NCBI GenBank assembly: GCA_002104905.1
Contig: MCFE01000003.1
Span: forward strand, 186,001 to 250,000
DNA length: 64,000 nt
Direction of reading: 5' to 3'
Source: Basidiobolus meristosporus CBS 931.73
Taxonomy: Eukaryota; Fungi; Basidiobolomycota
The position numbers were made by a program, and so were the translations under genes. Below, one piece after another: positions 36,184 through 59,958 of this stretch (the first letter of the stretch is position 1; every line of letters starts with the position of its first letter). The notes beneath the pieces were generated by a model. That model searched no databases. It saw nothing but the letters and a program-made list of their open reading frames with translations, and had not been told where the DNA came from.

Positions 36184-39100
36184 TTAGTTGGGGTTCATAA
36201 CATCTACATAGCGATTCCTAACACCACGCCGAGTAGTACCACTAGTACTAGAGTGACTTCTTGTCATTCCAATGCCTGCTCCTGGTGGACCTAACAAGCT
36301 AGGACCAGGACTTGAGCGTACACTTGGTGGACCACCCGCTAGTGTCCCCACCGTAGGAGATGCGGATTGAGCTCTATTAAGACCAGTGGGTGGTGGAGGC
36401 AAGGCTGCAGGTTTGCTTTCCTCTGCTGTCGCTGCCTTGTTGACCCATTTTTTTTGTACCTCATCGAAGTAGAAATTGCTTCCGGAAGGCAGGTGCGCTT
36501 TGGCAGGGGCGGGTTTGCTGTCTTTCTTGCGGCCCAAGAAGGAGAACAAACTCCAACTGCCTCCGTTAGCCTCTTGCTCTTTGTCCTCGGGCTTCTCTTG
36601 TTTGGCCTCTGCTGTTTGACCTTCGCCTTGGTTATCCTGGGCATTCTCTTCAGCCTTGGGGGCTTCTGTCGGCTTCTTGCGACTAAGAGATTTGTTGCCG
36701 AATCCAAGATCATCTTCGTCATCGTCATTATAAGCTGGGGTGGATGGTGTCTGCTGAACTGGATATGATTGACCAACTGCAGAACCGAAGGTAGGAACGA
36801 GTGAAGCGGAATTGGACATTAGCGAAACAAATTGGCCTTCCTGGTTGCTGTTGCTTTGGGCACTATCATAATCATTTACATTGGTGGTTGTGGCACCTTG
36901 GTAGCCGTAAGAACTGTCATATTCATTAGCTGGTGGTTGAGACCACCCGTACTGATTAGTGCTAGGAGTACTCTCTTCAGTATATGTGGCCTCATTTTGT
37001 TGTTGATTTTGAGTGTTGTACTCGCTATTCTGATCATAGCCGTAGCCGTAGCCATACCCATATCCATAGGCCGGATTCTCCCATGAACTTTCGCTTTGGA
37101 GCGGAGGTTGATTTTGCAACGAAGGAACATGGTTACCCTTTGGCGGTTCGTAAGTGGATTCACTATCTTCATTGATTTTAGGATTCCACTTCTCCTCTAA
37201 CGTTGGTTGGAGCGAACGAAGTAGTATATGAGCGGGACATGGCCACCGGAACGCCCTCGTATTGGTTGATGCCTGACGAAGGACTACTTGGTGAGGCAGA
37301 CCGTCTGCCATGGGGGTTGATTACATCGCCGTTGTGACTGAACGGTGAGTGCTTGCGTAGATGCTCATATCTTGACGTGATGTCGTTCACCGAAGCACTG
37401 CGAACTGGAACCTCCATGTTGGGTGCTTGCAAAACTGAGACACGTGGATTGTAGGTAGAGAATGGATCGGCAGTGATCTCGTGGGTAACCTCGCTCTTGG
37501 GCTTGGGATTCTCACTCTCGCCAACAATGAATCGATTCAAGCCTCTATCTACGGCATCCATGAGGCTACCAAGAGTAGGCTTTTTCATGGTGGTAAGCCA
37601 GGAGAGCGTTGTCACGTTGGAAGAGCTTGCCTTGTCGCCGAGAGATTTGGTGAGTCTTTCGTGGAGCTCCTTGAGCTTTTCCAAGAATAACTCATGGAAA
37701 TACGGGGAGCCCTTCGGATGGACCTTGACAATATTCGCAATGGACTCGCAATACCTGAGTGCTTCGTTTGTATAACCACAGTCTGCGAGATACCAGGCAC
37801 GATGAAGCTTGTAAGGTTGAAGGAATGGCAATCCATTGACGGGAGTCGAGCTCCGAAGAGAAATAGCATGCTCATAAATCTCAGTACGGTCAAGGGCGTT
37901 CAGATCCCGAGCAAAGCAAGCAAGATACTTCCCATGATCTACACCAAATAGAACAGTTTTGACTGAAGGGGTATCCAGCCCTGAATGTATAGATGATTGT
38001 GGTGAGAGCAAATAGCATATGTGTGCAGCATAAATCCACCCTTGGCTTCGTAGCAAGTCTCCAAAACTAGTGAGAGCCTGAGTGTCTCCAGGAGTTCTGT
38101 TAGCCAGGATCATCGCAACGGTTTCGCGCCACTTCGAGAGTTTATCAACAGAAACGGCGTTTTGAAGTGGCTGGCTGGATAATGGCGAGACTAGAGGCTT
38201 AGGAAGAGACTCAGGCGTGAAGAAGTGTGACTGTGGGTCAGTAGCAGACAGTGGAGCAAAGTCCTTGATGGCGTCTTTTCCAAGGCCTGCAAACAGGTTA
38301 TACATGACCGTCATGGATTCTCGATTGGAATCTTTATCGGAGGAGATCTCCTCCTGAGTGAATTTTTGAACCACTTGCTGCCAGGTTTCTTTACCTACGC
38401 AACTACCGATAATCAAGGCATGCGCCCAAAGACCATTATCCATGGCAAACTTGGTGGCAACTGAGCGATCTCCCTTCAACAAGAGCTCTTGGAGAGAATC
38501 TAGCGCTCCAGGGGAAGCCTGCTTATGCTGAGGTGGATTCCTGCTCACATCGGAATTGCGCTTGTGCATGGACTGAGGGAACACCACTTCGAGAGTCTCT
38601 TTTTCAACATCAGCGCTATATGAACCAACATGCTTGTAAATTACGTTTCTGGGGTAAATGGTCGCAGTATTGATTCACATACCTTCCTAATAACACACCA
38701 TCATGATCACACAGTACTTTGAGTAATTTCCACAGGATGATTTCGTTTTGCGAATCTTCTTCGGTTTGGATCGATGGGCTTTCGCTTAACTCTCTAATCT
38801 TAGTATCCAAAAACTCCCCAACTGCCTTTTTGCGGGCTTTGATTGAGCTCTTCTCGCTATCGAAAAGCAGAGGACCTGGGAAACTGTTGGCTTTTTTCTC
38901 TCCAACAATGTTGCCCAAACTATGAAACTTCAATTCTCCAGGATACACTTTGGTTACTGGAGTGGATGAAGATGCGGAAAACCTTGTTACCACTTGAGGG
39001 AACATAAATAGGACTTTTCCACCGAAGCCGAATGTGACAATTGGAGATCCTTTGGTTCTACCAAGTGGGTCGTAGATTCCAGAGTCCACGGCACTCTTTT

Positions 39101-42100
39101 CGCCGTAATAAGAGTCACCTTGCCCCATATTAGGATCATACTGGTTCCCAAAATTCTGATCAGAACTGTAGTTTGCAATAGCTTGAGCATCACCAACACT
39201 ACGATTGTTGGTGCTCTGGTCGATTCCATACGGCTGGTGGGATTGTTGGTCGTAATACATCTGACTAGCTTCTTGCTCATGCCCAGGTTGATAATACTGG
39301 GACGCACCGCCATACTCATCCTGTACAGAGTATTGCTCGGAAGTATGCTGAGCATCGTTGCTGGGTTGGCCGCTATTCGGGTCATATTGAGCATATTCCT
39401 GCTGGTAGTAATCTTGGTTTGGCTGATATTGCCCGTCTTCTTGGTAATACCCTTGCTCATTGTAATAAGACTCTTGATCTGGGACAACCGCACCCTGGTT
39501 ATCGGGAGTGTACTGCTCCAGAGTCTCTGGGTTAACCCCAGCGTGGCCCTCAACTGCTTCTCCTTGCCCTTGTCCGTAATAGTTTGATTCATACTGCTGG
39601 CCATCGTAATATCCATAGTTCTCGTACCCATTACCGTAAACGGCCCCTTCAGTCTGCCAGGTATTGTTATCGGTTGGAACAACACCTTCATCAGGAATTT
39701 CATCTACGTTTTGTTGCTCGTGGCTATTTTGCTCAGTGCTCTCCACGTTACTGGTAACGGTGTGTTCATAACCATGCTGCTGATAGTCTTGTGGATAGTA
39801 TTCTTCATTGTACCCGTGTTGTTCTCCGCTGTAATAGCCTTCTCCACCTTCCCAAGCTTGTTGAGTGTTTGCGACATCAGAGCTCAAAGGCTCCTCCATA
39901 GCGTGAGGCTGTGTCTGATTTTCGCCCTCGACCGGTGCGTCACTTGGGGTGTATTCCTGTGCATAATAACCTTCCGTGTTATTGTATTCGCCATAACCAG
40001 GCACCTCTTCCCATGCCCCTTGATACGTATTAGATCCCAATGCCTCCTGATTGTCGGCGAATTCAGCATTATTCTCGTAAGAAATATTCTCATATTGCTC
40101 TTGTTGAAGATGGCTCTCCTCGCTTGGATAAACATTGGTAAAGCCCTCATAAGCTTGCTGCTCAGACTGATCATGAGTGGGGGAGATATGTTCATAAAAT
40201 GAATCAGTAGCATAATTCTCAAGTCCATTATCTGCATTCACATTGGGCTGTTCCATACACTTGTCTTCGCTTGGTTTCTCTTCGACTTGAAGAGGTTTCG
40301 GCACCTCCTCAAAGGGAGATTCTACTACCGACACTACACCGCTATGGTCCTGCTCTGGCGACTCTTGAGGAATCTCAAGTTTGGGCTCAACCATTTCTCC
40401 TTCCTCGTAAAATTCGGAGTTGTAATGGTCGTGTGGACTAGACTCAGCTAACGCCTCACCACCTGCAGAAACGTTTGTATCATCCAAGTGGTGCTGGCTT
40501 GCAAGCTCTGTGGATTGCGCGTCAATGGGTGATTGTACAGAATGAGCGCTAGATTCTATCGATGGCCCTTGAGCACCTTCACTGGCAAATTCAGAAAATT
40601 CAGGACCCTTTTGAATGCTGTCTTGGTCTTCTGGGTGGTCGACAGATGTATCATTGGGGTTTAGGCTTTCGGGGCTTTGCTGGTCAACAACAGAAACAAA
40701 TCCTTCGGGAGATTCCTTGCCCTCGCTATCGAGGATATCCTCGTGGTTCGTATCCAAATCATGAAGCTCAAGCAAGGCATCGTCCTTCACGAAGTTCTGC
40801 TCTTTAACCTCACTAATCTCCTCTTTGCCAATTAGCTCCTCGTCATTGGCGAGTTCGTCATTCGGGACCTGAACACTTTGGATTGATGGGGAGGTGGATT
40901 GCTCAAGAGAGGGCTCGGATGATTGAGTTTCCAACTTCGACCCATCCTCATGGCCATCTGCCTCTTTTAAGGTTTCCTCCTCAAGAGGCACATCTGCCGC
41001 GGTGATTTCCAACGGTGGGGATGCTACATCCGGGCTGTTGCCTGTCCCCGCTACAACATCGTAGTCAGATGAATCTTTTTCTGATTCATTGTTCTTTTCC
41101 ATTGATGCTGTATCTTGAAGACTAGACGTTGAACCCAGCACCAAATCATCCAGGTCATCTAGGTTGTCAGATTGGGAATTATTCTGCTCGAAGGAGATGG
41201 ATTGATCTTCCGGCGATTTCGGTGATGATTGCTTATCGCTGGCGTAAGATCCGCCGACGAAACTGTTAAACATATCCGCCGCAGTGTCAAAGAGAGAGGG
41301 ATCGTTGATATCAATATCCTCCGTTTGTCCAAGAGGATCATTGGCACTCTTCTGCTCCAATGGCTTCGCAGTCGGCGGTTCTTTGACATCTGGTTGGGCC
41401 ACTTGTTCGGTGACATGGTTTTCAGCAGTCTCGAATATGTCCGAGTTATCTTTGACGATGCTAATCTCGTCTTCGGGAACAATGTGCTCTTGGGTGTTCG
41501 CGTCGCTTGAAGGGTTGAATTCACTCCGAGATTCGGTCACTTGTTGATGGGAAGTTTGGTCTACCTGGGTATTCGGGTCCTGATGGTAATTGATTTCCAA
41601 CTCTTCACTTGGGTTTACAAGCGCTACAGCCGGGCTGTCAGGTACTGTTTGATCTTGGAGAGTCAAGGTGTTTGATGTTTTCTCCATCACAGAATAATTT
41701 GTTCCCTCTGGTATGGAATAATCATGCTCATAAGGAATCCGATCGTTGTTTTCTGCAGAGAAAGATTCGAAAAATGCACTCGGATCACTGCTTTGAGTTT
41801 CCGCAAGATCTTTGCCTTGATGGCTGGACATTTTCTGATCTGGCGCGTGCTGTGGATGGGGAGGCTGCGTTGGATAATGAGAAATGGCAGCACTAGTCTC
41901 ATCCGTTGGCACCTGTTCGGTTGGTTGATTGTACATCTCCCCTCCGCCTTCGGTATACTGACCATTGTAATCATATTGTTGATAATAGTCAGTATAGGCT
42001 GGATCTTGTGCTGACGAATTGTAGTCATAGCCTTGATAGTCATAACCGTACCCTCCAGCGTAATCTTGATTCTGGTACTCAGCATTAGGATTGTTGTAGC

Positions 42101-42878
42101 TTGGGTCGACATACCCTTGACCTTGGTTGTAGTAAGCAGCCGCTGAAGGATCCTGTTGGTCGTATCCTTCATAGTAGTTGTTGTACCCGTCATAGTTGTT
42201 TGCATTGGATTGCTGGTACTCTTGATAATCCCCTTGGTATTGGGAGTGGGGATCAGCTTGCTGTGCATAGGCGCCTTCTGCTCCTCCGTAGCCAGGGTGT
42301 TGTTGCTGGTAAGCATTCTGTGAATACCAATCAGCTTCATTCGAAGTCTGTTGGTATTGCTGGCTATTTGGGTCTACGTATGATTGTGCTTGATAAGCAT
42401 CATATGACGGGGTCTGTACTTGCGCTTGATGCCCATACATCTGCTGTTCTTTGCCAAGATTATCGAAGAAAGAAGACTCTGGTGCCGCGTTGGAAGAACC
42501 CATATAGGCTTGGTTTTGCTGAGCAGAATTCACAGAAACATTTTGGGTGGCTGAATAATTATCAAAGAACGAACTCGCGTTATCAGCACCTTGATGTACG
42601 GAAGGTTCGGTGGTTTTGGGGCGCTGGGGAGTAGGATACTGCGGTGAAAAAGGTACAGAGGGCTGCGTAGCTGGGGCAGTGGAATTACTGCGAGGTGGAA
42701 TAGACCCCTTATTACTATGCGAGGTATTATTCCAATCGTAAGCTTGAGCGGGTTGAGTGGATTGGCTGCTCACCAAGGAGCCAAACAAATCAGTCTCTCC
42801 ACCGGAATTCCCAAAAAAAGGGATGGGGCCCTCATCCACCTCGCCTTTGGAATTTGGCCGTTTATCGGCTGATGCCAT
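36184..42878 (-). CDS. SEC16: COPII coat assembly protein Sec16, multi-exon
   Basis: PIVTFGFGGK, HALIIGS, WRETVAMILANRT, AAHICYL central domain; C-terminal AHLP..SNFYFDE..KKWVNK and RYVDVM. Confidence 0.92.
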
Positions 42879-43477
42879 ACGTATGATTATATTTGTCTAG
42901 AGAAAATTATAGAGCCAAGATGTTAACGAAACGGAATCGTAGTAACACGCTAGTAAAGACTCGCGAATGTATATGTATAATATAACAAAAAGACAATCAA
43001 TGAAATATGATAACGAGCCAAGCAAGTACAGGTAAAAAGTAAGGGGTTTACCGATCAACTCGTAATAATAAATTTACTGAGGCTGTTCTGACCAATGAAC
43101 AGCCACCAACCAATTCAGACCATTCACCACTGCGACTGCATTCACATTCATTCCCGATTATTTGCTCTGGCCATGTGTTTACTTACCTACGCACACCTTT
43201 TACCCAGACTTTGTCTAACCTCATATTGACTGTAGGCAAATATCGACAAATCTTAGAAATGCTAGACTAATACTGGAAGTTATGCATTAATTCACGAGTC
43301 ACGTTTGATTGTTATTAATTTTGATTTGGTGCTCATTTAAGCAAATTTTACTTTTGTGTGTACCTACACTGCGATGAATCATGGTGTAAAGATTAATTTA
43401 TCTTGGGAAGGAATCAGTCAGAGTGGCACAGTCGGAGGTTGGAGCTTACCAAGTGTTGTTTAGAGCTAGGCACATCT

Positions 43478-45906
43478 ATGTTCGCTGTAAGACGTTTTAC
43501 CCAGCTAGAGGGATGGTATCTACGTGCTGAGGTTCGCCCGCTGAAAACGAGCTCGAACGTACTCGTTAGGGCTTTCTCTGTTCAGCATTCTTTTGTTACT
43601 GAAGATTCAACGGAAACACCAGCCAAGCCTCGCCGTAGTGTGTTCGACATCGACAAAGCTGAGCTCACAGCATTTGTGAACGGTTGGGATTATGAGGGAG
43701 AGAATCTTGAGGGGGATTTTGAAACCGACGATATCGTTCGAGAGGATTCCGACTTTGTCGGCTACAAAAAGAGAAAGACCTCAAACCGTTATGTGGAGTA
43801 CGAAGAGCAGGAGCAATCAGACTACCGGAAATTGGAGTATCGTTCGCGGACGCAAAGCACGGAACACACAGGGTATGAAGTAATAGGAAGGAATAAACAT
43901 CTCGCACCTCTGAATGAGCTATCCAACTTCGAGGATGAGAAAATAGAGTTTGAGCCGATGTCAGTCAACAAAGAGAGCGATGCCTTGGACACTCTGACTG
44001 ATACTGACATTGTGTGCGATGAGAAATTAGTCTTTGAGGATGATAACGTAGAATTTGAAGAGAGAAGTGCATCATACAAGCATCAGAAGCTAAGCCATGA
44101 TGTGTCAGAGATCGACGAAAAGCTTGAATTCGAAGATGTTTCCCAGCCTCGGCAGGTAAACAAGTACAACTTCCAATTTGAGTCTAACACCAATGATTTG
44201 GGAGACTATATTCCGGGGTTGACGTACGCGCGTTGGGCACAGAATTCTAGCACTGACAAGAAAGTGATACTGGAGGACATTGACCTGGATTATGTTGAGC
44301 GGCGAACTTTTAGTCGACTGCTGCAAAAGCTTAATAACAACCCACAGCGATTGTCAAGCGATCTATTTATAGATGAAAATGTGACTGTTGAGCGCTTTCA
44401 GAAAGACGAGAAGCAATTGGAAAGGATCGCAAGAGAGCAATACTCCAACACAAACAAAGTGGACCTGCCACATTTGCGTTTGGACGTAGACGAGAAACTG
44501 CTGTATGTAGACGAATTTGGCCACGCCGCACAGAAACCCAGAAAATGGTCAAAAAAGTATGAATTTGAGAAAACTGATTTCTACTCGGAGCAGACAAACA
44601 AACGCGTTGTACCTGATGTACCACTTCCTGAGTTGCAACCCAGTGGGGTAGATCAACCAGTACAAACACCGGAACCAAGTAGCGAACAGGAGAGGCTTAG
44701 ATATGCAGATGACAAGGTAGAGACAAAAATCTGACGAGCTTCACGCGTTCCTAATAGCTAACAAGTAATCTGCTTTGGTAGACTACAGACTATTGTGATT
44801 TCAAAAAGATCCAGATCACTGGAGGCGATGGCGGAGATGGATGTGTCAGTTTCCTTAAAGCTAGGCACCGCAACAAAGGAATGCCAGATGGAGGAAACGG
44901 CGGCCAAGGCGGATCAGTATATTTTGAAGCCACAAACGATATAGTCTCGCTCCACTCAGTCAGCTTAAAAATACACGGACAGCGAGGTTCAAGTGGAAAG
45001 GCTAAACATCATGATGGGAAATCGGGGGCTGATGTACTTATACGGGTTCCTGTTGGCACTGTAATTCGTGAAGTTGAACTTTCGGAAAGAGACGCAGAGT
45101 CTTTACCGCCTAATGATGATTGCTTCATACATTATCCGGGATGGAGGAACAAGAATTTACACAACATCTTCACCGACACCATCAAACCAATCTCCATACC
45201 TCGTCAGAAATTACCCGAATTGGATTTGAAGACAGATGGGCAGAAACACCTGTTATGCTATGGCGGGTTGGGCGGCTTTGGTAACCCCTACTATGTGACC
45301 GGCCAAAACAAGTACCCAAAGTTCGCCATGAAAGGACAGAAAGGCCAAACACGTATTTTGGAATTGGAGTTGAAGACAATTGCCGATGCAGGGCTCATTG
45401 GGCTGCCCAATGCGGGGAAATCGGCATTCTTGAGGTCCGTTTCGAATGCCTATCCTAAAGTTGACTCTTATCCCTTCACTACCATACACCCATGCGTTGG
45501 CACGATTCAATACCCTGACCTATTCAATTTGACTATCGCTGATATTCCTGGGCTAGTTGAAGGGGCGCATAGGAATGTAGGACTCGGCCACTCGTTTCTG
45601 CGACACATAGAGCGTAGCAAAGTCCTAGTTTACGTTATCGACCTTGCAAGAAAAGCCCCATGGGATGACCTAAGCTTGTTGCGCAGCGAGTTGGAGCTTT
45701 ACAAGCCTGGGCTAGCACAGCGACCATCACTAGTCATAGGTAACAAAGCTGACATATCCAATGTAGCTAAGAGCAATTTTGAACACCTCCGATCCGTAGC
45801 TGAACTGCAAGTTGTTCCCGTGTCAGCCAAATTGCAAAAGAACATCAAAAAAGCTACGTCGTTACTCCGAGAGATGGTCGAGAGTGTAGCAGGTCAAGCC
45901 TGTTGA
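43478..45906 (+). CDS. MTG2: Mitochondrial Obg-family GTPase Mtg2/GTPBP5 with ~410-aa N-terminal extension; one intron (44717-44781)
   Basis: Presequence-like start MFAVRRFTQ; phase-0 GT-AG intron joins to DFKKIQITGGDGGDGCVSF..PDGGNGGQGG; G motifs GLPNAGKS, PFTT, DIPGL, NKAD. Confidence 0.85.
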
Positions 45907-46209
45907 ACAGCTACTGAGTAGTCTACATCTTAGTTCCTTAACAATACGACCACTTCCATCATTTTAGAAACTACGCCACTTGACTTTGCACTTGCACTTC
46001 TTTCATTTTTATGAAATTGTATCATCATTAAACCATAGATCGAGAAATCTACAGCTGTATTGCTAGTACGGAAGTTACTTTGTATCGAGAGACTAATCGT
46101 TGAGTGTGAGCTAGTCGCGCATGTATTTTAGACTCGAAGTTCACAAAAACCAGTAGCAGTCAACTTTATTTTTAAAGAGATTCAGAGATTCATTGGGCTT
46201 GCACCATCG

Positions 46210-46884
46210 TTAACCCCATGCAGCCGTAGTACAGTAGTTAATAATTAATTGGCCTTCTACACTGAATGACTAGAGGATTGTGACAGATATGATACTTTAG
46301 AATCCAACTTATGCTGCATCGTAAAACTAATAGGGCAGCGTAACTAACCTTGTAAAGATTTGATACCAATTCGTCAGGTGCAGGCGAGAATGCACTGTTT
46401 ATATACAAGAACTATAAATATAGGAAACGGAATTAGTTGACGGTTTGACGATGCTCAGACTGAGATAGAAAGCTTGAGGTTTTCCTTTACCAAAGGTTCT
46501 GAGCCCTTGTATTTGAGTTCTTTCCGAAGAAACATGATTACTGTCTGAAATTTATGGGAAGCAGTAATTTTGTATAAAGATTGTCGCAAAATCGGCGCGT
46601 TTCCTATGGCTCGAAACCGAACTACCACTATATAGTAGGAGTAAATACTTTAGTTGACTGGAAAACAAGCTTTCGAATGCAAGGCTTGAAAATAAATATA
46701 AGCCTTGACTACCTTTAGATGTGTCTTTCTTCTTATATTGAGCTAAAGGATCGGAATTTGTGAAGGGAAACCCTTGAGAAGGTGGGTTTGTATTAATAGG
46801 AGATGCCGTTTCGGTGTCATTTACGGATGGTGATAGTGGCATTGCTGGAGCCTCAGCATCGGAAGGTGTGTTAGGCATACTCAT
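46210..46884 (-). CDS. ATG12: Ubiquitin-like autophagy protein Atg12, 4 exons (not captured intact by the ORF track)
   Basis: Spliced product KVVVRFRAIGNAPILRQSLYKITASHKFQTVIMFLRKEL...FLYINSAFSPAPDELVSNLYK|SFSVEGQLIINYCTTAAWG*. Confidence 0.95.
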
Positions 46885-46999
46885 AATTCAACAAGCCTTG
46901 CTGCAGTTGGGTATACACTAATGAAAGGTCTAAATGCAATGAATCAAAATGAACTCAGTCGTGACTATGAATTCGAAGTCGGCAATAAACCAAGAATCA

Positions 47000-47013
47000 A
47001 TATCACGTGATAT
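47000..47013. promoter_or_regulatory. Perfect 14-bp palindrome ATATCACGTGATAT (extended E-box) in the ATG12/FANCA shared promoter
   Basis: Read directly; TCACGTGA core is a canonical bHLH(-ZIP) site. Confidence 0.55.
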
Positions 47014-47084
47014 GTGCGGCTTCATATATGCTATATTTCAATAAGAAAGCCTGTGTCCAAGCGGCTTATGGCTGAGAAGGAAGT

Positions 47085-50000
47085 ATGCTAGAAAAGGATA
47101 TTGACCTTCTAAATGATCTTGACGATGGTATAGATTTCGAATCTTTTGTTTTTGAGGAGAACTATCACCCTACTCGAAAGATCATTCTACTACAAAATCT
47201 TCGCACAAAAGAAGGTACTTGCCAATCAACTTTTCATATACAACGGTGGAATACCCAATAAGTTAACGGATTCACTGGCTGCTTAAAAGCACTCAACGTA
47301 TTGCAGGCTAGTAGAAATCTCGTCGTTGAATCCCAATATCTTGGAATTCCGACTGCACGATATGCCGCACGAGAAATGGCATATTGGCTATTGAAATGTG
47401 ATACCAGTGAGCAGGTACTTTATGCCTAGGTTTAAATATTGAAGATCTTGCCCGACGTGTATTGACACTTGAATTAGTTCGAAACCATATGTGGGGTTAT
47501 TAAAAAATTCGATGCCGAGGCTCAATTTGATATGAAACGCTTCATCGGCGTGCTACTGAACTCATATGGACAAGGTAGAGAAAGGCCTACTGGAGAGAAT
47601 CTCTCGCCACAGATCTGTATCCTCTCCCTATTGTTCTGCCTTAGAACACAGCTGCCTGGATTGATGTCAGAAGAGATGATATTTGAACAATTAAAATCAG
47701 TCGAAAAATTTATTGTCTACGATTTGAAGGAAATGGTCTTGACCACAGATGGTCAACTACAAGCAAACGAGGTTTTCGATGGTTAGTCATTCAGTCCACC
47801 AAAGCAGAGTTCTACGACCACAAAAGTGTTCATAACACCGTATCGCTTAAAATAGATTTTTTGAAGAGTGCTTTGAAGATCATCAATCTATCGCTAGCAA
47901 GTGAAAATGAGAGAGAGAGTTACAGTTTCCGGCACATGAAGTTTATTGAACAGATATTCCATAGCATTTTAGAACAAGATATGACGAACTTCCTAGACTG
48001 GAGGTAAACTGCATCGATAAAACATCAGTCACAACGCCACTAATAGGTATCATGTCTGTTCAGCATTACTGCGCCGAAAATCGCTGTTTACCAATACACA
48101 CTGGACTTTATTATTCAACACACATTTGCTTTGGAGGAAGTAAAGACATCTCTGACAGTTCAGGATGTTTTCATACGTGAGGTCACACGCATATGCTGTA
48201 AGACACCATGCTCTTTGGATGAATTGAATGGAAAGCCTCAGTCAGAATTCACAAAAACCTGTGGAAATGCAGTGAATGCGATGCAAAATGGTATTCTTTG
48301 AGCTTCTAGAAATCATGTCTGCCTTTTCTAAACTAGAATATCTTCAAGATAATAGCAAGCCTTATGAATACCGACGCCCGGTTTTTGCCACTCTCCTAAA
48401 AATATTTGATACTAGCAAAGACTCTACTCTCTCCGCAACAGATCAAAGCATCGCGGTGATCAACAGTGTCATTTCGATTGGGAGACATTTAGCAGTAATT
48501 CAGATTGTTCATGTGCAAACTATACCTCAGAATGTACTGACATTGACTATGTTAGCTTCTACCTGAATTAACATGCCTCTTCGGCTTAATTCGAACCTTT
48601 TGCTCGTTTGATCCCTTATCGAACAAGGAGGCCCTTAACGTCCTTACTGACTATTTGGAGAATGCGATAGAACACTACGACTCTAATTTGCTTGTACTGG
48701 TTTTGAATTTTGCATGGATAGCTGAAAGTGAAAAGGCGTTCAGACACATTAATGGCTACCGGATTTGGGTGCAGGTAAATAATGAAGAGATCTTGAATGC
48801 AATAAGGCGCTTTCTCTGAAAATTAAGCTACTTGTAAGCGCAATATTATCCGTGAGGACGCGAGCCTTCTTTCTACGAAACGAAAAGCCCAGTTTCTCTT
48901 TACTACTTTAAGCAATATGGTTCCGTATCAATCAAGCAAAGCATTACAGGTACTTTGCAGAATTATCTCACATTCCCTGCACCTCTTTACAAAACTCAAT
49001 TTGGCTTTAGTTGAATTTACACTCTTTTTTGGGCCTCTCTCGTTGGCGAGCTATTGTCAATGATTATGTAACACTACTAAAAACGCGACTGCTGGATATG
49101 GGAGTAAGTATAATTTTGTTTTTTCCATTTAGGCTCCACTAGCTGATTATTTCCACCATCTAAAGGAATCTATACAACTGAACAAAAACTCTGTGACGCC
49201 ACAACCCGCACTCACGCAAGGCAGTCGTATGTTATCAATAGGAAAGATCCTTACCTCCTTTTCACTCTCGTCCCGCATTCCCCAAGCGTTGCTAGAATCC
49301 ATAGTGTTTCGTAACCGCTGGTACTTGAATACCTTCCTACCCGAATTGATGTACGGAGAACCACTCGAGGAAGAAATCTCTGAAAGCATTCCATCCACAA
49401 CTAGAGCGTCGTTGATTGAGAATCTGTATAAAAATGGAAAGATCGGAAAGAAACAGTACGACAGTTTTTTGGAAAGTAACCGTCAGAAAAAACTTGAGCT
49501 CGCACAAGCCGCAAGAAATAGAAACCCTGGACAACCATCAGATAGCAAATCACCCATCCTCATAGACCTTGATTCACCAGAGAAGTCACCTAATAGAAGC
49601 CCAATACCCATAAAACCGGATGTATCGCAGGAAGCCCTCTTCAAAACGATTGAGCGTTTAGTTGAAGCACTATTGGGCAGTATTGAGGATTCCTCAGATC
49701 ATAATCTCGAACGTTTAAAGCTAGACGAGAAGATCAGCGAAATTAAAACGGCAATTGCTTCACTTCTGGACATCACTTTGAACGATGAATCCCACACTAC
49801 AAAGCAAGCATCATTAGAGCACATGACCGACTGTTTGATATATGACTATAGATCTCACGAAATATATCAGAATCCACGGAAGCTACTAGATCTTTGCAAA
49901 ACTTCGAACTCTTTGACCACTTTACTGATGAACGTGATTCAACTGTTTCTTCAAGATATTCAGCATAAACAAGCGAGAAAGAGCATCAGCATTCAATGCT

Positions 50001-52709
50001 TTATTTCCTTTCTAGATATCTTGAGAACATTCAAGTCACTTCATCCCAACGTATATCTGAACCTCTATCAATCACTATACTCGAATTCCACTGCTTTTTC
50101 GACTGACGAATGCTTGATTATTGCCTTGATATGCTTGATATTGGACGCTTGGCAACCTGCCGGACATAATGGGAGATCCTCTGGATTCGTGCACATTACT
50201 GCCCTTGATCATCGTACCAACTATTCCCACCCCAAACCAATCTCATACGATCCATTCAATCGGATATCTCCTTTGAAGGCGCTCTTTGACCTCTTTATTT
50301 ACGGCAACCTCCCTACTAGCTTTCATTCACCAACTCTTTTGATGGTGCTTTGTTATGTTATCACCATTGGTTTTGGGGTTTTTAATAATCAATCTCAAGA
50401 AAACCTCGAATTACTGATCCACTCTCTTGAATCCGGGAATTTATGGTGCGAACACTTGGGTGCAACTATTGACAAAACCTATAAGCAGAATGAAGGTAAT
50501 GGCGTGACTATATAAGCGAATTGGCTCTTACCAAACTGACGTTGCTTCTACAGGCCTTGTACCCAAAGAATTTGTCTGGAAGGTTGCATTTGAACTCGAA
50601 AAGATGAAAAGCTACGACAATGTTGAACTGTTACCCAATCAGCAGCTCAGTCAAGAAATAACACAATTGCTTCCTCGCCTCCCAAAGATCTATCGCCATT
50701 CAGATTTAACCTCGTGGATCACTTGGACATTGACGCAGAAACCCAACGATCAAGGTATGCGTTAGAGAATGGAAACACCACATGTGAAATTTACTTAATA
50801 TGATTCGATAGAGCATCTCAGGAATATGATCACGACTAGATTTTATCAGCAATTCAGTAAACCTTTCGTCATAACAGAAAATGGCCCTGGAACAGCTGTC
50901 CAGCGACTAGGTGTAGGTATTTTGACATACATTCTTCGCAAGGAATTGGCACGTGCCCTCAATGCACAATCATCCGAAACTTTGAGATCACTGCAACGTA
51001 TTATTGAGATAGCCGTTAACGATACACCCTTGGAGTATAACAGCACAATACAGCTATTGAAAGACTTGCTGATGTCGCAACCGGAGAGACATCTTAACCC
51101 TCAAATGGAGTGTACAGCTGCTCAAGAGTTGACAAAATGGGCCCGGGAATGCTTGATTGCAGAACTACAAAGTATCGACACTGGAAATGACTTTTATGGA
51201 TATCAAGTCACATCTGACAAGGTAAATTACAATCTAGTGTGACATCCAATTGAAACAATCGAATAATTTGGTTAGAACAAGCAATTCTGGAGCATATATC
51301 TCGAAACTTTTCAAACCCACCTCAACCTTAGCTTCAGCGATCTCATCATTGAAGGGCTGGATAGTCAACATCCAACTAAGCAGCAAATACAAGAAACAAG
51401 CGTATGGGTTGAAATGTGTTTCTCGATGAACAAAGTCATGAATGATCCAGCATGGACGAAGCCGATCCAACTACAACTGAAAGAAGTATTCTCTCGATTC
51501 GGTGATAATTTCTGCAGTATTGAAGTTGGCTTCATTCACAATATATCATACGAAAACACCACTAATTATTTGGCCTTGGATTGTAGCAATTCTACTCGCG
51601 CTGTCCCACCTTTTTATTGGCTTTGGGCGAATGCTCAAATACCGACTTAGTGTGCTGCAGAACACATAACATTACTGTCTCGCACGCCATTAAGCAACTA
51701 CAGACCAGTGTTTCTTCGATTATAAGTGGCACGTGGTGGTATGTGTTCATACACCGATTGATAAGCTCTTGCCCCGATATCTAAAGTACTTTTAAGTGAG
51801 GGCCAACCCAGCTCCGCAGCCCAACCAGATCCATATAGTCTGGCTTGTGCCGTCCATAATCACATTGAGGATATCTTGAACTCGGCAATTTCAGAGGAAG
51901 GTGACCAAGCAGCAAGAATCGTAAGTGGGCTATCTGGTCTTCTTAAATACTTCAAACAGCATACTTCGAATCGACTATATTATGTGGAGAAGAAGAAAAA
52001 TGAGGATTTCGTTTGCATCCTTTACGAAAAGTGTGTGTGGAAAATCATACAACTGCTTTCGGAAGATTTCGTTCGTCTGGGAACAACACTTGCCTCGTTA
52101 ATATTTGGCGATACGACTTTCGCAGACCTGACTACCTTCAAGCTCACGTTCTATAAAGAGCTCGTATTAGGGATTCTATGTACACAGCCACAAGTACTGC
52201 AGACTCTTTCGTTTGAATGGCACTCGAAACATTCACCGAGATCCAAAACTCTCACTACCACTGGCCTCAGCTGGTGCCTGTATTTACAGCTTACTCTAAT
52301 TCTGACATCCAAATTAGAGAGAGATTTCGGGCCGTTTGAACCTAAATACGTGGCACGATATTACTTCATCAACGTGCTACCGGCCTATCTCAACTTTCAA
52401 CAGCATCTGTTTAGCGCATCCGCCCTGTATTACTATCCACTTGTTATCAACAACGCTGTACGACGCATGATTGAGCGCTGGAACAGCTCTCTGCTCCCCC
52501 TTGCTTCCAAAAACCCTGAAGAGATCGCTTTGGACCCCCTTTCACACGAATCCACCAAGACATTAATCACGAGTCTGTGGGCCTTGGACCCTACCATTGG
52601 TACCCAGATTAAGCAACTTTGGGTACATCTCAATCTGAAACCTAGGTGTACGGGAACACCAGTGAATCACCTGAAGAGAAAAGCACCACTTGTTATCGAA
52701 ATAGATTAA
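47085..52709 (+). CDS. FANCA: Fanconi anemia group A (FANCA)-like protein, many exons; start codon approximate
   Basis: Collinear motifs matching human FANCA as recalled: [104 protein letters not shown]. Confidence 0.78.
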
Positions 52710-53512
52710 TCTCGCCAAACACCTCCACCCCCCTCCCCTCAACCATCCCTCGCCGATCATCCGTGTATTTATCAATAGAAATGTGATTGATTTGTGTATC
52801 ACTCCTTGAACCAAGTGACTTATCCATCAAACATCCATGCGATTGGGTCAAGGTCATAGGGCTTCGAATCGTATGATTTAGTATTGCGCTTCAATATGGA
52901 AATATTACGCGTTCGCGCCGGGTGCAGTTGGTATGTAGCGCCTACGTAATTCTCGGTGACATTCCCACAAAGCAGATATTATTGTGACCAATGATGCGGT
53001 CAGTGGCCATGTAATCTTGAGCCCCATTGGCCAAAATTGCTAGGATCAATGGATGAGAGGGAGCTTTTGAGACTGGTAGCTTCAGACATGCATCATTTCA
53101 AGGGATCAGCCATAGGATCGCCACACACATTCACAATGGAACACCCATAGAATTGGTGGATCTCCGTTAGAGAGGAGAGGAAAAATTTTCGTGACAAGTT
53201 GTCGAAAAAATTCTTGACAAGGGTAGGAATCCTCCCTTTTTTTTAAAATTTCTCCAAGCGCAAGTAGCATCCCCTCGTTCCGTATTTCTTTTTTGTTTTT
53301 TGTGTTTTATTTAGTTCCATTTTGGTGACTTTGTCAATTTCTTGTCAGTATATTTATGTATCTGTGAATGCGTTGGTGAACTGTCGTGTATTAACTTATC
53401 GTTATTGATCTATTTATTCGCTCTGTAAATCGTTGACGCTCCCTCCCCACTGTGTGTTGAATTTTGTCATTTTCCGCGAACTTTTCTTCTGGGGAACCGT
53501 CGAATTTAGAAT

Positions 53513-54537
53513 ATGTCATCGGATCGTAAGACTGGTCGCGTCAAGTTCTTCAACTGTCAAAAAGGTTACGGCTTCATCATCCCTGACGATGCCGCCGAAA
53601 CTGGAACTGCTGAAAGTATGTATTTTTCAGTTTACTTTGAGATAGGTGGCCATATTCGCGACACTTGCTCGGAGGTGCTTGTTTCCAACGCATTTGTTTC
53701 TGCTTGAAAGTTTACCGATGATGGTTGTGTTTTGTGTGCCCAGTGAAAGTAGCGGGTGGCATTGTTCGTGCTATCTACTCTTGCCTCTCACGTCCTCGCC
53801 CCTTCCACTTTCCCTCAATTAATCCAAATCCCTTCGCTTGTAGTTTTCGTACATCATAGCGCTATCCATAACGATGGCGGTTTCAAGAGTCTCGCTGAGG
53901 TATCCACATACTCCTCTTCAACCTACTAATTATAAGTGCGCTGATCGTTCGCGTAATAGGGCGAAGAAGTTGAGTATGATTTAGTCCAAGGACCTAAGGG
54001 TATGCAAGCAGCCAACGTTTCAGGCCCCAACGGCGGTTCTGTTCGTGGCGCCCCCAACTTTTCTAGAGGTGGCTACGGAGGGTTAGTTCGAAGGTTACAT
54101 AAGGAACGCACATCTTGTTGCTGTTGCTAATGCCAACTCTTTCATAGTGGTTACAACAAGTTTGGAGGATACGGTGCACCAGGTAAGCATGAGGTCAGGT
54201 ACAGCTCTCGGGCGATTCTAACCCATTAATCGACCCGACTTTAGCTGGTTATGGTCATATGGCCCAGGGCGGCTATGGTCAATACCAACCCTCCGGCTAC
54301 GGTGGTCAAGGTGGATACGGACAATACCCACAATCATATGGTGGTCAGCAGAATTTCGGTAATCAAGGTGGATTTGGTGGTGCTGGCTACGGCTATGGCA
54401 ACCAATCCTTCGGCCACGGACCTGGTGGTTACGGCCAATCCTATGGCCAACAACAGCAACAACCACAGCAGCCTTACAACGGCGAGTTTAACCAGCCTTC
54501 TGGCTATGATAACTCCAACCAAGGCGCTCAATACTAA
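53513..54537 (+). CDS. Cold-shock-domain (Y-box/GRP-like) RNA-binding protein with Gly/Tyr/Gln-rich tail, multi-exon
   Basis: RKTGRVKFFNCQKGYGFI (RNP1), VFVHHSAI (RNP2), GFKSLAE|GEEVEY..VQGPKG.QAANV; GGYGQ repeats. Confidence 0.9.
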
Positions 54538-54902
54538 GGGCCAAGCCTGGCTACCAACTCTCTATTTTTACTGCAACTACTTCGTGTGACTTAACTCTTG
54601 TATTTTGAAAACATTCCAATCTATAATGTGTTAGGAGCCAAAAACCCATCAAAAAAATCCCCCATTTCCTACACGGATTATCCACTCGCGATTGCGTGAA
54701 CGGCATTTGTAGTGTATAGGTCTCTTTAACTTTCGATTTCTTTCTTGTCAAATGTCTGAGCGCAGTCCTGATCTATCTCCCCTACTTTTCTATACACCTA
54801 TGACGTGTTTCTTGTAGCGATATTCTTTTACTTCTTGAATTTTTCATTTTCTTGAGCGAAAGAACACTTTATTTAATAATAAACCACAGGAAATGTACGC
54901 AG

Positions 54903-56484
54903 TCAGTTGTCGATCTCCTTGCAGGAGGAGTACTCGTCAAGCAAAGTGAGCGCGGCACCCAGCGACCAGCTCGTCTCGATGTCGTCGATCTTCTTGGCCA
55001 CCTTCAGCGGAGTGTCCAGTGGGATCTCGTAGGCGTGGTGCAGCAAGGAGAACAGGTACGAGAGGTCTAAGCAGTCGTGGAATCTATCGGGTTGCATGAA
55101 GAACTTGACCGCCTCGCTCTCGGAGAGCTCGGGGAAAAAGGTTCTTTCACAGATCTTTTTGTTGGCCTCTTGGATCTCCCAGAGTCCAATGTTTTGCTTG
55201 AAGCCCAGGCGTTGGGTGATGTCGTGGAAGTAGGAGAATATGTAGATCTCTTGGTGGGTGAAGGTTTCGGTGAGTTTTGGTTGATAAATGCCGTTGAATG
55301 AACACGGTGACGTTGGGCATTCAACCGACTTGTCGAGCATCTTGTACATCAATTCGTGACATTGTTCCATGCCAGTGGCGATGCCTACCAGGGTGAGTGT
55401 GCGTTCGCCAGCCTCGGTGGGGATTTCCCACTTTTGAGAAGTGCGAGGGAAGAGGCAGGGGTGGGGGATGACTATCTGATGGGCTTCGCTGCTCTGAGCG
55501 ACCAATGCTTTGGCTTGTTTGCGTGCTTCCATCAGCCCATAGCCCAAGTGGCTGTGTTGGTAGAGGATATGCTCGCGTGGGCCGAATTTGAGCCTGTATT
55601 GATGCTCTTCTGGGAATTCGTGACTCTCACTAAGCGTCGGTTCGAACACGATTTGTGTAGAGCCGCCGCCTAGATCCAAAATCGCAACGGTGGGCTTCTG
55701 CTTCTCCTGACCAATGTTCTTGAGAAGATAGTTCACCGTGATCCATGCGTAGACCCCTAGGAAGTATCCAAAATGAACTTAGCTACTGAAATGCCATCCA
55801 CTGCTGCTGCTCGACTTACCTTCTTTCGCACCATCCAGAATGGCAACGCCTTCATCCTTGGTGAGCGGAAAGGGGTAATTCTCGACAAGTCTTTCTTCAA
55901 CCGCTTTCAGGATTTCAGCGCTCTTTTCTTCACCAAGCAATCTCAACCCGGCGGTGGCTTTGACGGTGATTGGGGTACATTTGTGCAAGTGTTTAGGAAT
56001 TTTCTTCAAGGCGTGATCAATCAAAGGATCCAAACTCTTCGCAGCAATGTGCGGTTCTTCGGAGTATGCCGATAGACCAGGCTCTACCTGTTCAAAAAGC
56101 TCATCAAGAAGTTTCACTTCATTTGAGCAACGCTCAAAAGTATACACATGAATCCGAGAGCCAGTTGAGCCAGCATCAATGATAGAAACATATTCTTGTT
56201 TACAGCCTAAACGGATAGTAGTCAAAGCAGAACACCATGAGTACTGCGAGTAGAAACAAGCCACAAGGTGATTTTCCAGTAGCCTTACCTGAAGGGTTGC
56301 TTGTGAAGTAAAACCAAGTAATAAAGGAAAATATGATAAGTAAGAAGATTGGCTTCACTCGATCATTCGAAAGGTCTGTGCGCTTTTCTGCAACGTTTTT
56401 CGGCACCTCCTTAGGTGAGCCTGAAGGATCGCTTTTCCCTTCCGAAGTTTCTCGCTTACGTTTAGTCAGCTTGACTTCAGTCAT
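54903..56484 (-). CDS. GDA1: Golgi guanosine diphosphatase, GDA1/CD39 family, multi-exon
   Basis: N-terminal TM anchor; apyrase motifs DAGSTGSRIHVY, KATAGLRLL, EG|VYAWITVNYL, DLGGGSTQI, SWSLGA. Confidence 0.9.
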
Positions 56485-57336
56485 CTTTGAGTTTCACTGT
56501 TGGATTTCTTATAAGTGGTTGTGATGATGCCCCGGAAGCATGGAGCTATTTTAATACTTAGGAGCAGTTCCAAACCAACGTCACTGTGGTTACTACGTTC
56601 ACTCCCCTTGTTACCCGTTCGAATACCTAGGAAGTGTGAAGATTTCACTGATCAAAATACCAATTTAGTATAATTGCTGGACAATATCATGAAGAATCTG
56701 TGCTTTGCTGGAGGAGACAAAATGGGGCTGGTTCCTTGTTCCCGGATGATCCACCGGCGATCCAACAATCCCAACAAAATTAGTATATCACAAAGTAGGA
56801 TAAGCATCGAATTTAAAGCAAATTAGAAGCAAGAATTCAAGGTTTAAAGTAAAGTAGCAGCAGGAATTACTTAATCCGCCGGCCTGCATCTGAAGTTGCT
56901 ATCCGATATTTGCTTCTTCGATGCGTCGCAGTTTATAATCGATAAACGAGATCACGCGATTGCTAAACTAAAGTGCGGAATTCGTAAGTTCATGTAGCAC
57001 AGAGACAGAATTCGCAGGCACTGCATATTTTTCACAGCACGATTCTTTCCCGACTGGAGCTGTTGCCCGGTTTTCAGGAACTCTAAGAGGTGGATTGGAA
57101 TTTCTCACGAGCGATGGTGGAAGCACATCTCTCCCATATTTGAATGCGAATGGTGCTACAGCTGCTCGTAACTGTTGTGACCTCAAACCTACTACCAGCT
57201 TTCGAGATGGATTCGAAAATGTCGCACCAATAACGACGGTTTGAGATTTAAGCTTGCCTCGAAGTATAAATACTAAGGCACTGCTACTGCTCAAGGCACA
57301 TCTCAAGTCTTACTATCATTGCAGCTTATTTTGAAA

Positions 57337-59958
57337 ATGAGATTGCAACAACTGTTCCTCTTATCCGCTCTTCTCCTCGCCGAAAGTGCTCTTGGTAGTA
57401 GACCTATCGGAGTTCTGAAATCTGTTCCTGCGGGCTTTGGTGAGGGCACTGCCACCAGTGTCGTTCCCCATGCATACATCGTCGAGTTCGACGAGAATGG
57501 TGATCACGCAGCCAAGGTCAAGGCCCAGGATCTACTTCGCGCTGGTTTGAAGAAGCAGGGAATTGAATTCCAAGAACGCGCCGTCTTCACCGATTCCTTC
57601 AACGGTCTTTCCTTGAATGTGGGTGTCGAGCACCTCGATTTCTTGGCTTCATTCGAAGGGGTCAAGGCGATCTGGCCAATTGTAAGATTCCTCTGCCGTG
57701 GTACTTCACACACCAATCCATTACTAATCCTGAGCATCATTTAGACTCAACATGTGAAGAGTGCTGCCGTTGCGAAGCCTGCTGCTTCCGGAAGTCTTCC
57801 TGCCAACCTTATCTCTGACCCTCATGTGATGACTGGTGTCGATAAGGTACACAAGTTGCTCAAGAATACCGGTGAAGGAATCAGGGTTGGTGTGATCGAT
57901 ACCGGTATCGATTATAGCCATCCCGCCCTTGGCGGCTGCTTCAAGAGCAAGAACTGCCGAGTCCAATACGGTTATGACTTTGTCGGTGACGAGTATAACG
58001 GTACCCTTGGCTCCCTCAAAGGTGACGAGGACCCCAAAGATTGCCAGGGTCACGGAACCCATGTTGCTGGTATCATCGGTGCCAATGACAAGAATTTCAT
58101 TGGTGTCGCCCCCAAGGTTACCTTCGGTGCCTACAAAGTCTTCGGTTGCACCGGTGGTGCCCCAAGTGACATGATCATTAAGGCCATCGAAAAGAGCGTC
58201 GCTGATAAGATGGATGTCATCAATCTCTCTCTAGGAAGTCCCCTTCCATTCCCCGATGATCCGATCACCAGAGCCATTAACAGAGCGGCCGAGGCCGGAG
58301 TTGTTCCTTGCATTTCTGCTGGTAACGATGGTATGAACGGTCTATGGACTGTTGGTAGACCATCTACAGCCAAGAGCGCTATCTCCATCGCTTCTTTCGA
58401 CAACGTCAAATATCCTGGTCAGGCGTTCACCATTCACGAGGACAAGGGCAAACAGTTTGTTGCTGGTTATGAAGGTTTGAAGGCAGTATCCATCAAAGGT
58501 GCCTCCTTTGCCATTGCTAAAACCGGTGGCTGCAATCCTTTGAACGAAGACCTTACTGGTAAGGTTGTTTTGTTCTTCAAGTCCGAGTCGTGTGACTTGG
58601 TTGTGAAGGGGCTCAATGCTCAGAAAGCTGGAGCCGTGGGTGCTTTTGTGTATTCTACCACCTTCGGTGCCTACGTCCCAACATCCATGGATCCCGCCCT
58701 CAAGATCCCCCTGATGGGACTTCAAGCTAGTGATGCTGCTTATCTCAATGCTCTTTACGAGAAAAATCCCAAGCTTACCATCACCTTCGATCCTAAACAT
58801 CAACTCTACACCAACCCCAATGGAGGAAAGCCATCTTCCTTCACCGCATGGGGCCCTGACTTCGAGCTCAACTTCAAGCCTGATGTTGGTGCTCCAGGTG
58901 GTATCATCTATTCCACATACCCAGTTGCTAAGGGTGCCTATGCTCACTTGCGTGGTACCTCTATGGCCTCTCCTTACACTGCTGGTTCCGTGGCCCTTTA
59001 CCTCAAGTCCAAAGGCAAGGTCAACCCTCTTGCTGTGCGCTCTGTCCTTCAAAATACCGCAAACCCTGTCAGAGAACTGAACTTCAAGGGAATCACTTCT
59101 GCCGGAAAGCAAGGAGCTGGTTTGCTCAATCTCTGGGATGCTATTCACACTGACACTTTCGTCTCGCCATCCAAGTTCGCGTTGAACGATACCGTCCATT
59201 TCAACGGAGTCCATACTCTCACCGTTGAAAACAAGGGCAAGAGACCTATCACCTACGCTGTTGACCACTATCCTGCTGTCTCAGTGAATGGTTATGACAA
59301 CAAGGGCTACCCCGTTCTTCAGAATGCCTTTGTATTATCCGGCGCTGGAGCCTCTGTCAAAGCCTCCCCATCCACCGTTACCGTCCGTCCTGGTCAGAGC
59401 AAGAAAGTGAAGATCACAGTGACTCCACCTCGTTTCGACAGAAAAGATTTCTGGGTTTACTCCGGATATGTCCAATTCAAGCCTCTGAACGGCAAGAGCA
59501 ATGTCGTCCGTGTTCCTTACTCTGGAGTCGCTGGGGATCATCACAGCAGAAAGGTGTTAGAACTCAAGGGCGAGAAGGCTCCAGTGGTTGTTGACTTCAC
59601 TACTCGTGTCCCCAAGAAGGAATACACCCTTGTTGGCGCCGATATTCCCCTCATCCAATTCCCATTGATCCACCCAACTAAGTATCTCTCAGTTGCTTTG
59701 GCTGATGTCAAAGGTAAGGAAGTTGGACTTATCACCCTCAGTGAAGGTGGTATCAACCGCAACTACCCTGGCACAACCACTAGCATCAAGTTCGATGGAA
59801 TTATCACAGTGGTAGAGAAGGGCGAAGCCAAGGAAGTTCCAGCTCCATCCGGCACTTACACCGTGGTGATCAGGGGTCTCAGACCATTCGGAGTCAAAAC
59901 CAAACCTGAGGACTTTGATACCTGGGTCTCCGCTCCATTTGTAGTCAAGCGTTCCTAA
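57337..59958 (+). CDS. Secreted subtilisin-like S8 serine protease with I9 propeptide, PA insert and Fn3-like domain; one intron (~57683-57744)
   Basis: Signal peptide MRLQQLFLLSALLLA; catalytic VIDTGID, HGTHVAGII, GTSMASP; FKPDVGAPGG. Confidence 0.95.

Follow-up and report, generated by a model that had tools for sequence, protein, structure and literature searches.

Does the plus-strand gene at positions 47085-52709 of a 64-kb stretch of Basidiobolus meristosporus CBS 931.73 DNA (64,000 nucleotides; the window) encode a fungal orthologue of the Fanconi anaemia protein FANCA, and, if so, how much of FANCA does it retain? Our analysis points with high confidence to an affirmative answer to the first question: the gene is very probably the FANCA of this fungus, vertically inherited and kept functional, comprising 15 exons and encoding a predicted all-helical product of ~1585 aa that is likely a core-complex scaffold. 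What the present analysis establishes is the homology, the structure of the gene, its selection, and its synteny. The first-pass annotation, which had proposed a FANCA orthologue here from four peptide blocks, is borne out over the protein's central third and is consistent with the architecture of the gene as a whole; the flanks show no recognisable similarity to FANCA in Pfam, PDB, or hhalign comparisons.

Hand splicing together with a DP model yields a single 15-exon gene that fills 47085-52709 on the plus strand, as had been proposed, and that has a predicted product of ~1585 aa, in keeping with a preliminary size estimate of ~1400-1500 aa. The splice model was refined by comparison with the Basidiobolus ranarum orthologue (KAK9766422.1; 1599 aa; annotated as 'hypothetical protein K7432_004509' and uncharacterised), superseding a first automatic model whose introns of 151, 118, and 101 nt were wrong by this comparison and were replaced. 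The refined model has 14 introns, all GT-AG and all 54-75 nt in length, and a reading frame free of stops across all 15 exons. Exon 1 (47085..47214; 130 nt, equal to B. ranarum exon 1; placed by hand splicing and the DP model) starts with the first ATG downstream of an in-frame stop at 47073-47075, and a tblastn protein match to the window begins at the same position, 47085. Exon 2 (47290..47414) is identical in length to B. ranarum exon 2, and exons 3 (47478..47781), 4 (47856..48003), and 6 (48349..48494) are placed by the refined model and B. ranarum comparison, as is exon 5 (48064..48290), which is separated from exon 6 by a 58-nt intron (48291-48348) picked by agreement with B. ranarum. 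In the 3′ part of the gene, exons 11 (50554..50754) and 14 (51587..51738) are likewise placed by comparison with B. ranarum; exon 12 (50812..51221) is identical in length to its B. ranarum counterpart; exon 13 (51276..51524) has a weak donor, GTTGGC, that is kept as GTTGGT in B. ranarum; and exon 15 (51797..52709, including the stop codon) is predicted to be all-helical, and its end carries a basic KRK/KKRK patch and the conserved terminus IEID. Exons 7-10 carry the FANCA similarity and are described below.

The window product is 100% identical to the deposited protein ORY08175.1, which carries the UniRef name 'Fanconi anaemia group A protein helical domain-containing protein'. The deposited protein is 1255 aa long; its model is missing exons 1-5 and 8 and has three introns of 22, 29, and 39 nt, none of which remains in the refined model. 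The corrected full-length model (1585 versus 1255 aa), which regains exons 1-5 and 8 and drops three introns too short to be plausible, is a minor novelty of this work.

Comparison with B. ranarum reveals conserved synteny and intron structure. In particular, KAK9766422.1, whose gene model is complete, unlike the B. meristosporus deposit, shares the 15-exon structure and the neighbouring genes, with 14 of 14 intron positions shared and 11 of 15 exon lengths identical, and gene order in both species is OBG, ATG12, FANCA, CSD, GDA1, S8. The two proteins are 58% identical over 1583 aligned columns, and collinearity spans all 1585 residues of the refined model. Values of pN/pS for successive thirds of the gene are 0.13/0.84, 0.19/0.75, and 0.33/0.74, with pN far below pS throughout; the gene is under purifying selection. 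The short introns required by the deposited model would fit a pseudogene in decay or a relic that is not expressed, but these introns are gone in the refined model, and we reject this reading as highly improbable, given the intact, stop-free 15-exon frame, the collinearity with B. ranarum, and the low pN relative to pS.

Basidiobolus inhabits animal guts, which would favour a different account, namely that the assembly is contaminated with animal DNA or that the gene was recently acquired by horizontal transfer from an animal host. The same account draws on a published FANCA tree (Barua, Plecha and Muszewska, 2024; PMC11061109), in which ORY08175.1 is a leaf that adjoins animal FANCAs and is not grouped with Mucorales. 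Against an animal origin, the gene lies among housekeeping genes on a 288-kb contig, has 14 short introns, is only ~26% identical to animal FANCA over the part matched by hhalign, and has a B. ranarum orthologue with the same synteny and intron positions; contamination or transfer is effectively refuted, its probability being close to nil. Purifying selection, together with the synteny and intron structure shared with B. ranarum, shows that the gene is neither a contaminant nor a pseudogene.

The detectable similarity to FANCA begins in exon 7 (48556..48774), in which the part resembling the Pfam domain Fanconi_A_N starts at ~48568 and the hhalign match starts at ~48640. All four peptide blocks of the first-pass annotation are present on the plus strand, in exons 8, 9, 10, and 10, respectively. 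Specifically, exon 8 (48839..48949), which is skipped in the deposited model, contains block 1 (48878-48949), which aligns to residues 466-489 of human FANCA and also to bird FANCA; exon 9 (49011..49103) contains block 2 (49053-49100) and represents the last part of the Fanconi_A_N domain; and exon 10 (49166..50495; 443 aa) contains the FANCA_helical domain (49238-49474), including blocks 3 (49277-49351) and 4 (49403-49444), followed by a low-complexity linker and then by the start of an arcN-like region (to ~50122). The human FANCA strings given for comparison in the first-pass annotation are correct: they are printed in HMMER alignments to PDB chain 7kzp_A, with the counterpart of block 1 from residue 466, that of block 2 at 506-521, and then that of block 3 and RVAFIESLKRADKI.

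Profile searches identify the same module. FANCA_helical (Pfam PF24781) matches window exon 10 with E 2.5e-9 and 37.9 bits (cut-off 28; profile positions 8-80 of 82), the deposited protein with 35.6 bits (above the gathering score), and the B. ranarum orthologue with 43.4 bits. Fanconi_A_N (PF15865) matches residues 365-499 of the B. ranarum orthologue with 33 bits (cut-off 27), over profile positions 217-351 of 355 only, and matches window exon 9 alone with E 0.074 (profile positions 326-354). A two-sequence Basidiobolus profile searched against 177,635 PDB sequences retrieved human FANCA (E 4.6e-12) and a second FANCA entry (E 1e-11), and no other entry below E 1; the single protein matched only FANCA entries (E 2.1e-7), as did exon 10. 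An hhalign comparison with 14 bird FANCAs gave a probability of 97.6% and E 3.1e-12, aligning residues 389-820 with bird residues 391-768, and the refined model matched chicken FANCA with E 5e-14, with a conserved segment at 388-631 versus chicken 387-625. A word search of 5.8 billion proteins returned bird FANCA as the sole match outside Basidiobolus (E 7.7e-4). In the reverse direction, bird FANCA searched by tblastn against the 64-kb window matched no part of it but exons 9-10, and a word search with bird FANCA returned birds only among the 120 matches listed. An ESM Atlas feature search with exon 10 returned generic helical-repeat families (Med23, Urb2, Integrator) with scores of 0.89 or less and was uninformative. 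Judged by these sequence comparisons, the FANCA match in the central third is far beyond chance.

The module occupies the corresponding place in human FANCA. In human FANCA (PDB 7KZP chain A; 1477 residues in the entry), central residues 466-624 are collinear with Basidiobolus residues 459-629, and with FANCA entry 6LHS chain B the shared segment extends to 372-639. Motifs common to the human and Basidiobolus proteins are FLFxxLSxxVP, DYxxLxKTRLxD, IPxxxxExxxFRxxxYxxxFLPxL, and IExLxxxxKI. Homology to animal FANCA, together with collinearity, is demonstrable for the central third, which takes in the end of Fanconi_A_N, the whole helical domain of FANCA, and the beginning of arcN.

Nevertheless, significant homology appears to extend no further than this central part (residues ~360-820). 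The N-terminal 388 aa and the C-terminal ~765 aa, compared with human FANCA and other animal FANCAs, show no detectable similarity by Pfam, hhalign, or Smith-Waterman alignment against shuffles, tests that have little power since they rest on a two-sequence profile and low-confidence models. Specifically, the first two thirds of Fanconi_A_N were not detected by hhalign, Pfam, or Smith-Waterman alignment against shuffles; FANCA_arcN (PF24783) gave no Pfam match even at E 10, although the hhalign match takes in ~70 columns of arcN in the bird proteins and ends at bird residue 768; and FANCA_CTD (PF03511) gave no signal in low-power tests by Pfam, PDB sequence search, hhalign, Smith-Waterman alignment against shuffles, or word search. 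Residues 820-1599 of the B. ranarum protein retrieved only the two Basidiobolus proteins in a word search. An N-terminal motif, LGIPTARYAAREMA versus bird LGVPTAILAAKNAV, is visually appealing and unsupported by any statistic (hhalign, Smith-Waterman alignment against shuffles), and we do not count it. AlphaFold models computed from two-sequence alignments, from which animal FANCA sequences were excluded so that the outcome would not be circular, were of insufficient quality for a test of the fold, both for the C-terminal 910 aa (pLDDT 36) and for the last exon (pLDDT 56, pTM 0.51); Foldseek searches with the weak last-exon model returned only designed and generic helical repeats, from which we conclude nothing. 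A basic NLS-like stretch near the N-terminus of bird FANCA, RARKRK, is absent from the Basidiobolus N-terminus, and Basidiobolus instead has its KRK/KKRK patch near the C-terminus. The N-terminal 388 aa are 75% identical between the two Basidiobolus species. By these comparisons, the flanking regions of FANCA, which are expected to carry its partner-binding surfaces, are unrecognisable in the Basidiobolus protein.

Such a pattern could arise if the gene encoded a helical protein specific to Basidiobolus that retains the middle segment of FANCA, has flanks unrelated to FANCA in fold and partners, and works unlike FANCA. Similarity is absent outside residues ~360-820 in every test, and exon 10 searched against a large library brought up nothing but the protein itself and a single 282-aa fragment, leaving no material for a deep alignment. 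To our knowledge, however, the FANCA Pfam domains occur in no other protein family. The module also sits at the same absolute position in both proteins (459-629 versus human 466-624; start at 389 versus bird 391), overall length is similar (1585 aa versus about 1430-1477 aa in animal FANCA), and both proteins are all-helical, that of Basidiobolus, flanks included, by prediction. The reported absence from fungi of FANCG and FAAP20, partners of human FANCA (PMC11061109), would also suit a protein that works unlike FANCA. In view of the position of the module, the overall length and helicity, and the low power of the flank tests, we consider this reading distinctly improbable and retain the assignment to FANCA.

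By analogy with vertebrate FANCA, Basidiobolus FANCA would most likely serve as a non-catalytic scaffold within a Fanconi core complex of reduced composition, aiding the FANCL/UBE2T ligase in monoubiquitinating FANCD2-FANCI at stalled forks or crosslinks. A FANCD2 tree in PMC11061109 includes B. meristosporus ORX90317.1; no other FA genes lie within the 64-kb window. According to the same paper, FANCG is absent from all fungi and FANCC and FANCF are unreported in fungi, and its supplement lists FANCB, FAAP20, and FAAP100 among core proteins absent from fungi, so a vertebrate-style complex cannot be assumed. The suggestion that a FANCA-FANCG-FAAP20 module was ancestral to opisthokonts and retained in fungi accordingly finds no support. 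A tentative and rather unlikely variant is that Basidiobolus FANCA keeps only an ancient central module, with the conserved N-terminal 388 aa and the fast-evolving C-terminal half serving as surfaces for different partners. If so, fungal FANCA would work without FANCG and FAAP20 and would reveal an ancestral, pre-animal role, which might be to support FANCL/FANCE directly or to anneal strands.

Both the gene and its assignment to FANCA are already known from the literature and UniProt, and the view that FANCA is restricted to animals is outdated. Its presence in early-diverging fungi is reported by Barua, Plecha and Muszewska (PMC11061109) and repeated in a 2026 review. In the text of PMC11061109, Mucoromycotina and Glomeromycotina are the only groups said to bear FANCA, and Basidiobolus is not discussed; the Mucoromycotina homologues (Mucor lusitanicus KAF1798128/9, Rhizopus, Absidia) belong to the same published family as ORY08175.1. 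Our results confirm that FANCA is older than animals and persists in a fungal lineage that diverged early, as published in 2024 with ORY08175.1 in the dataset. Between animals and Basidiobolus, recognisable conservation appears not to reach beyond the protein's central third, a boundary that is relevant to modelling a minimal fungal Fanconi core complex.

From 47085 to 52709 on the plus strand, the window contains a series of stop-free blocks separated by short gaps, a pattern typical of an intron-bearing eukaryotic gene. To model the gene, we performed a splice-site search and checked the result against the sister species Basidiobolus ranarum, for which exon structure was obtained by exact protein-to-DNA matching of KAK9766422.1 (1599 aa) to its locus (L002, JASJQH010000156.1); the initial automatic splice model was changed at three junctions. 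The final model comprises 15 exons and 14 GT-AG introns of 54-75 nt and encodes a product of 1585 aa. Intron number and positions agree in the B. ranarum orthologue (14 introns, 57-75 nt); exons 1-9, 12, and 13 are equal in length in the two species; a weak donor at intron 13 is common to both; and an alignment of the two proteins spans 1583 columns at 58% identity and contains no large gap.

The first-pass annotation had proposed a fungal FANCA orthologue here from four peptides. All four are present on the plus strand (48878-48949, 49053-49100, 49277-49351, and 49403-49444), and the human FANCA strings given for comparison are correct, appearing letter-for-letter in HMMER alignments to human FANCA (PDB 7kzp_A). 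The proposal holds for the central third of the protein, which, on good sequence statistics from Pfam, PDB, and hhalign searches, is FANCA; the N-terminal 388 aa and C-terminal ~765 aa have no detectable similarity to animal FANCA. In particular, the window exon exceeds the gathering score of Pfam FANCA_helical (37.9 bits versus 28), as does the full-length B. ranarum orthologue (43.4 bits), and the B. ranarum orthologue also passes Fanconi_A_N (33 bits versus 27; profile positions 217-351 of 355). In searches of all PDB sequences, FANCA entries alone fall below E 1, both with the deposited B. meristosporus protein (E 2.1e-7) and with a two-sequence profile (7kzp_A, E 4.6e-12; 6lhs_B, a second FANCA entry, E 1e-11). 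Profile-profile comparison with 14 bird FANCAs aligns Basidiobolus residues 389-820 with bird residues 391-768 (97.6% probability, E 3.1e-12), the same absolute position in both, and the match extends into the first ~70 columns of arcN. The refined model matches chicken FANCA at E 5e-14, and in a word search of 5.8 billion proteins a bird FANCA is the sole match outside Basidiobolus.

The flanks show no match to Pfam at E 10 and, as separate parts, no hhalign match to animal FANCA; Smith-Waterman scores against animal FANCA do not exceed those of shuffled controls, and a word search with residues 820-1599 returns the two Basidiobolus proteins and nothing else. AlphaFold predictions from two-sequence alignments, from which animal FANCA was kept out to avoid circularity, have pLDDT 36 for the C-terminal 910 aa and pLDDT 56 for the last exon; both predicted models are all-helical and too uncertain for use, and the Foldseek matches of the last-exon model are generic helical repeats. 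The case for FANCA orthology along the full length is thus built on similar size, collinear order, and helical content rather than on direct evidence from the flanks. Between the two Basidiobolus species, conservation is highest in residues 1-388 (47085-48640; 75% amino-acid identity, pN 0.13), yet similarity to animal FANCA is not detectable there. At the end of exon 15 (52650-52706), both Basidiobolus proteins carry basic residues, KRK in B. meristosporus and KKRK in B. ranarum, ahead of a terminal IEID that does not vary between them. Bird FANCA has a basic RARKRK-type stretch at its N-terminus, whereas both Basidiobolus N-termini lack one; a nuclear import signal may have been relocated in the Basidiobolus protein.

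The exon 10 translation matches, at 100% identity, residues 198-640 of ORY08175.1 (hypothetical protein K493DRAFT_377823, 1255 aa, B. meristosporus CBS 931.73), which is encoded on a 288-kb contig and named 'Fanconi anaemia group A protein helical domain-containing protein' in UniRef100_A0A1Y1ZEB9. Compared with our model over 48288-52709, the deposited model is defective, being 5'-truncated and mis-spliced. Specifically, its start codon is that of an internal methionine, so that exons 1-5 (47085-48290) are missing; it skips exon 8 (48839-48949, plus strand), which carries the first of the four peptides; and it contains three plus-strand introns that the B. ranarum orthologue does not support, of 22 nt (48534-48555), 29 nt (49104-49132), and 39 nt (within exon 15). 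The short introns are accompanied by 13 and 11 extra residues not in B. ranarum, the 39-nt intron deletes 13 residues that B. ranarum keeps, and 13 more residues (VFSRFGDNFCSIE) are spliced away at the end of exon 13.

Synonymous sites are saturated between the two species (pS 0.74-0.84), and pN stays far under pS along the gene, rising from 0.13 in the N-terminal third through 0.19 in the central part to 0.33 in the C-terminal part, which indicates purifying selection throughout. The neighbours are ordinary housekeeping genes, encoding Sec16, an OBG GTPase, ATG12, a cold-shock-domain protein, GDA1/CD39, and a subtilase. The large Sec16 gene (37178-42878, minus strand) has a Sec16 mid-region domain and a Sec23-binding TPR_Sec16 domain in two long ORFs. 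The order OBG GTPase, ATG12 (minus), FANCA, cold-shock-domain protein, GDA1/CD39 (minus), subtilase S8 (43403-59958) is the same at L002. Together, selection, neighbouring genes, and shared order rule out contamination from an animal as well as recent transfer, and argue against a pseudogene. ATG12 (APG12 ubiquitin-like; 46238-46884, minus strand) lies upstream, head-to-head with the FANCA gene, with ~200 bp between start codons, and the layout is kept in B. ranarum (L002 5077-5763); the two genes may share a bidirectional promoter.

A divergent FANCA-like central segment is also present at 7503-8318 of a Logan contig (L001) of run SRR32476553, which is eukaryotic, with 46% GC and SNF5 and PI3-kinase genes nearby. 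The B. ranarum protein matches it over residues 437-621 (tblastn, E 1e-12), and the 282-aa product called there (P0002) scores 25.7 bits with FANCA_helical, slightly below cut-off. By sequence, this segment may represent another non-animal FANCA.

FANCA in Basidiobolus is already known: the presence of FANCA in early-diverging fungi was described by Barua, Plecha and Muszewska (Sci Rep 2024, PMC11061109), whose supplementary FANCA tree has 'Basidiobolus meristosporus CBS 931.73_ORY08175.1' adjoining animal sequences; a 2026 review restates the finding; and UniProt labels ORY08175.1 FANCA-related. As FANCA-bearing groups, the prose of PMC11061109 mentions only Mucoromycotina and Glomeromycotina, and its text includes neither the truncation and mis-splicing of the deposited gene model nor the label of uncharacterised that the B. 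ranarum orthologue still carries.

Within the vertebrate Fanconi core complex, FANCA serves as a non-catalytic scaffold that supports FANCL/UBE2T-dependent FANCD2-FANCI monoubiquitination; there are also reports that FANCA has strand-annealing activity (summarised in PMC11061109). According to that survey, early-diverging fungi have FANCL, FANCE, FANCM, and UBE2T, with no FANCC, FANCF, or FANCG reported; its supplementary text places FANCB, FAAP20, and FAAP100 among core proteins absent from fungi; and its FANCD2 tree includes B. meristosporus ORX90317.1. The broader proposal, in which FANCA, FANCG, and FAAP20 would form an ancestral module, finds no support there. If the homology holds, the components present (FANCD2, FANCL, FANCE, FANCM, UBE2T) and absent in the survey suggest, at about even confidence, that the most likely role of Basidiobolus FANCA would be as the scaffold of a reduced core complex.
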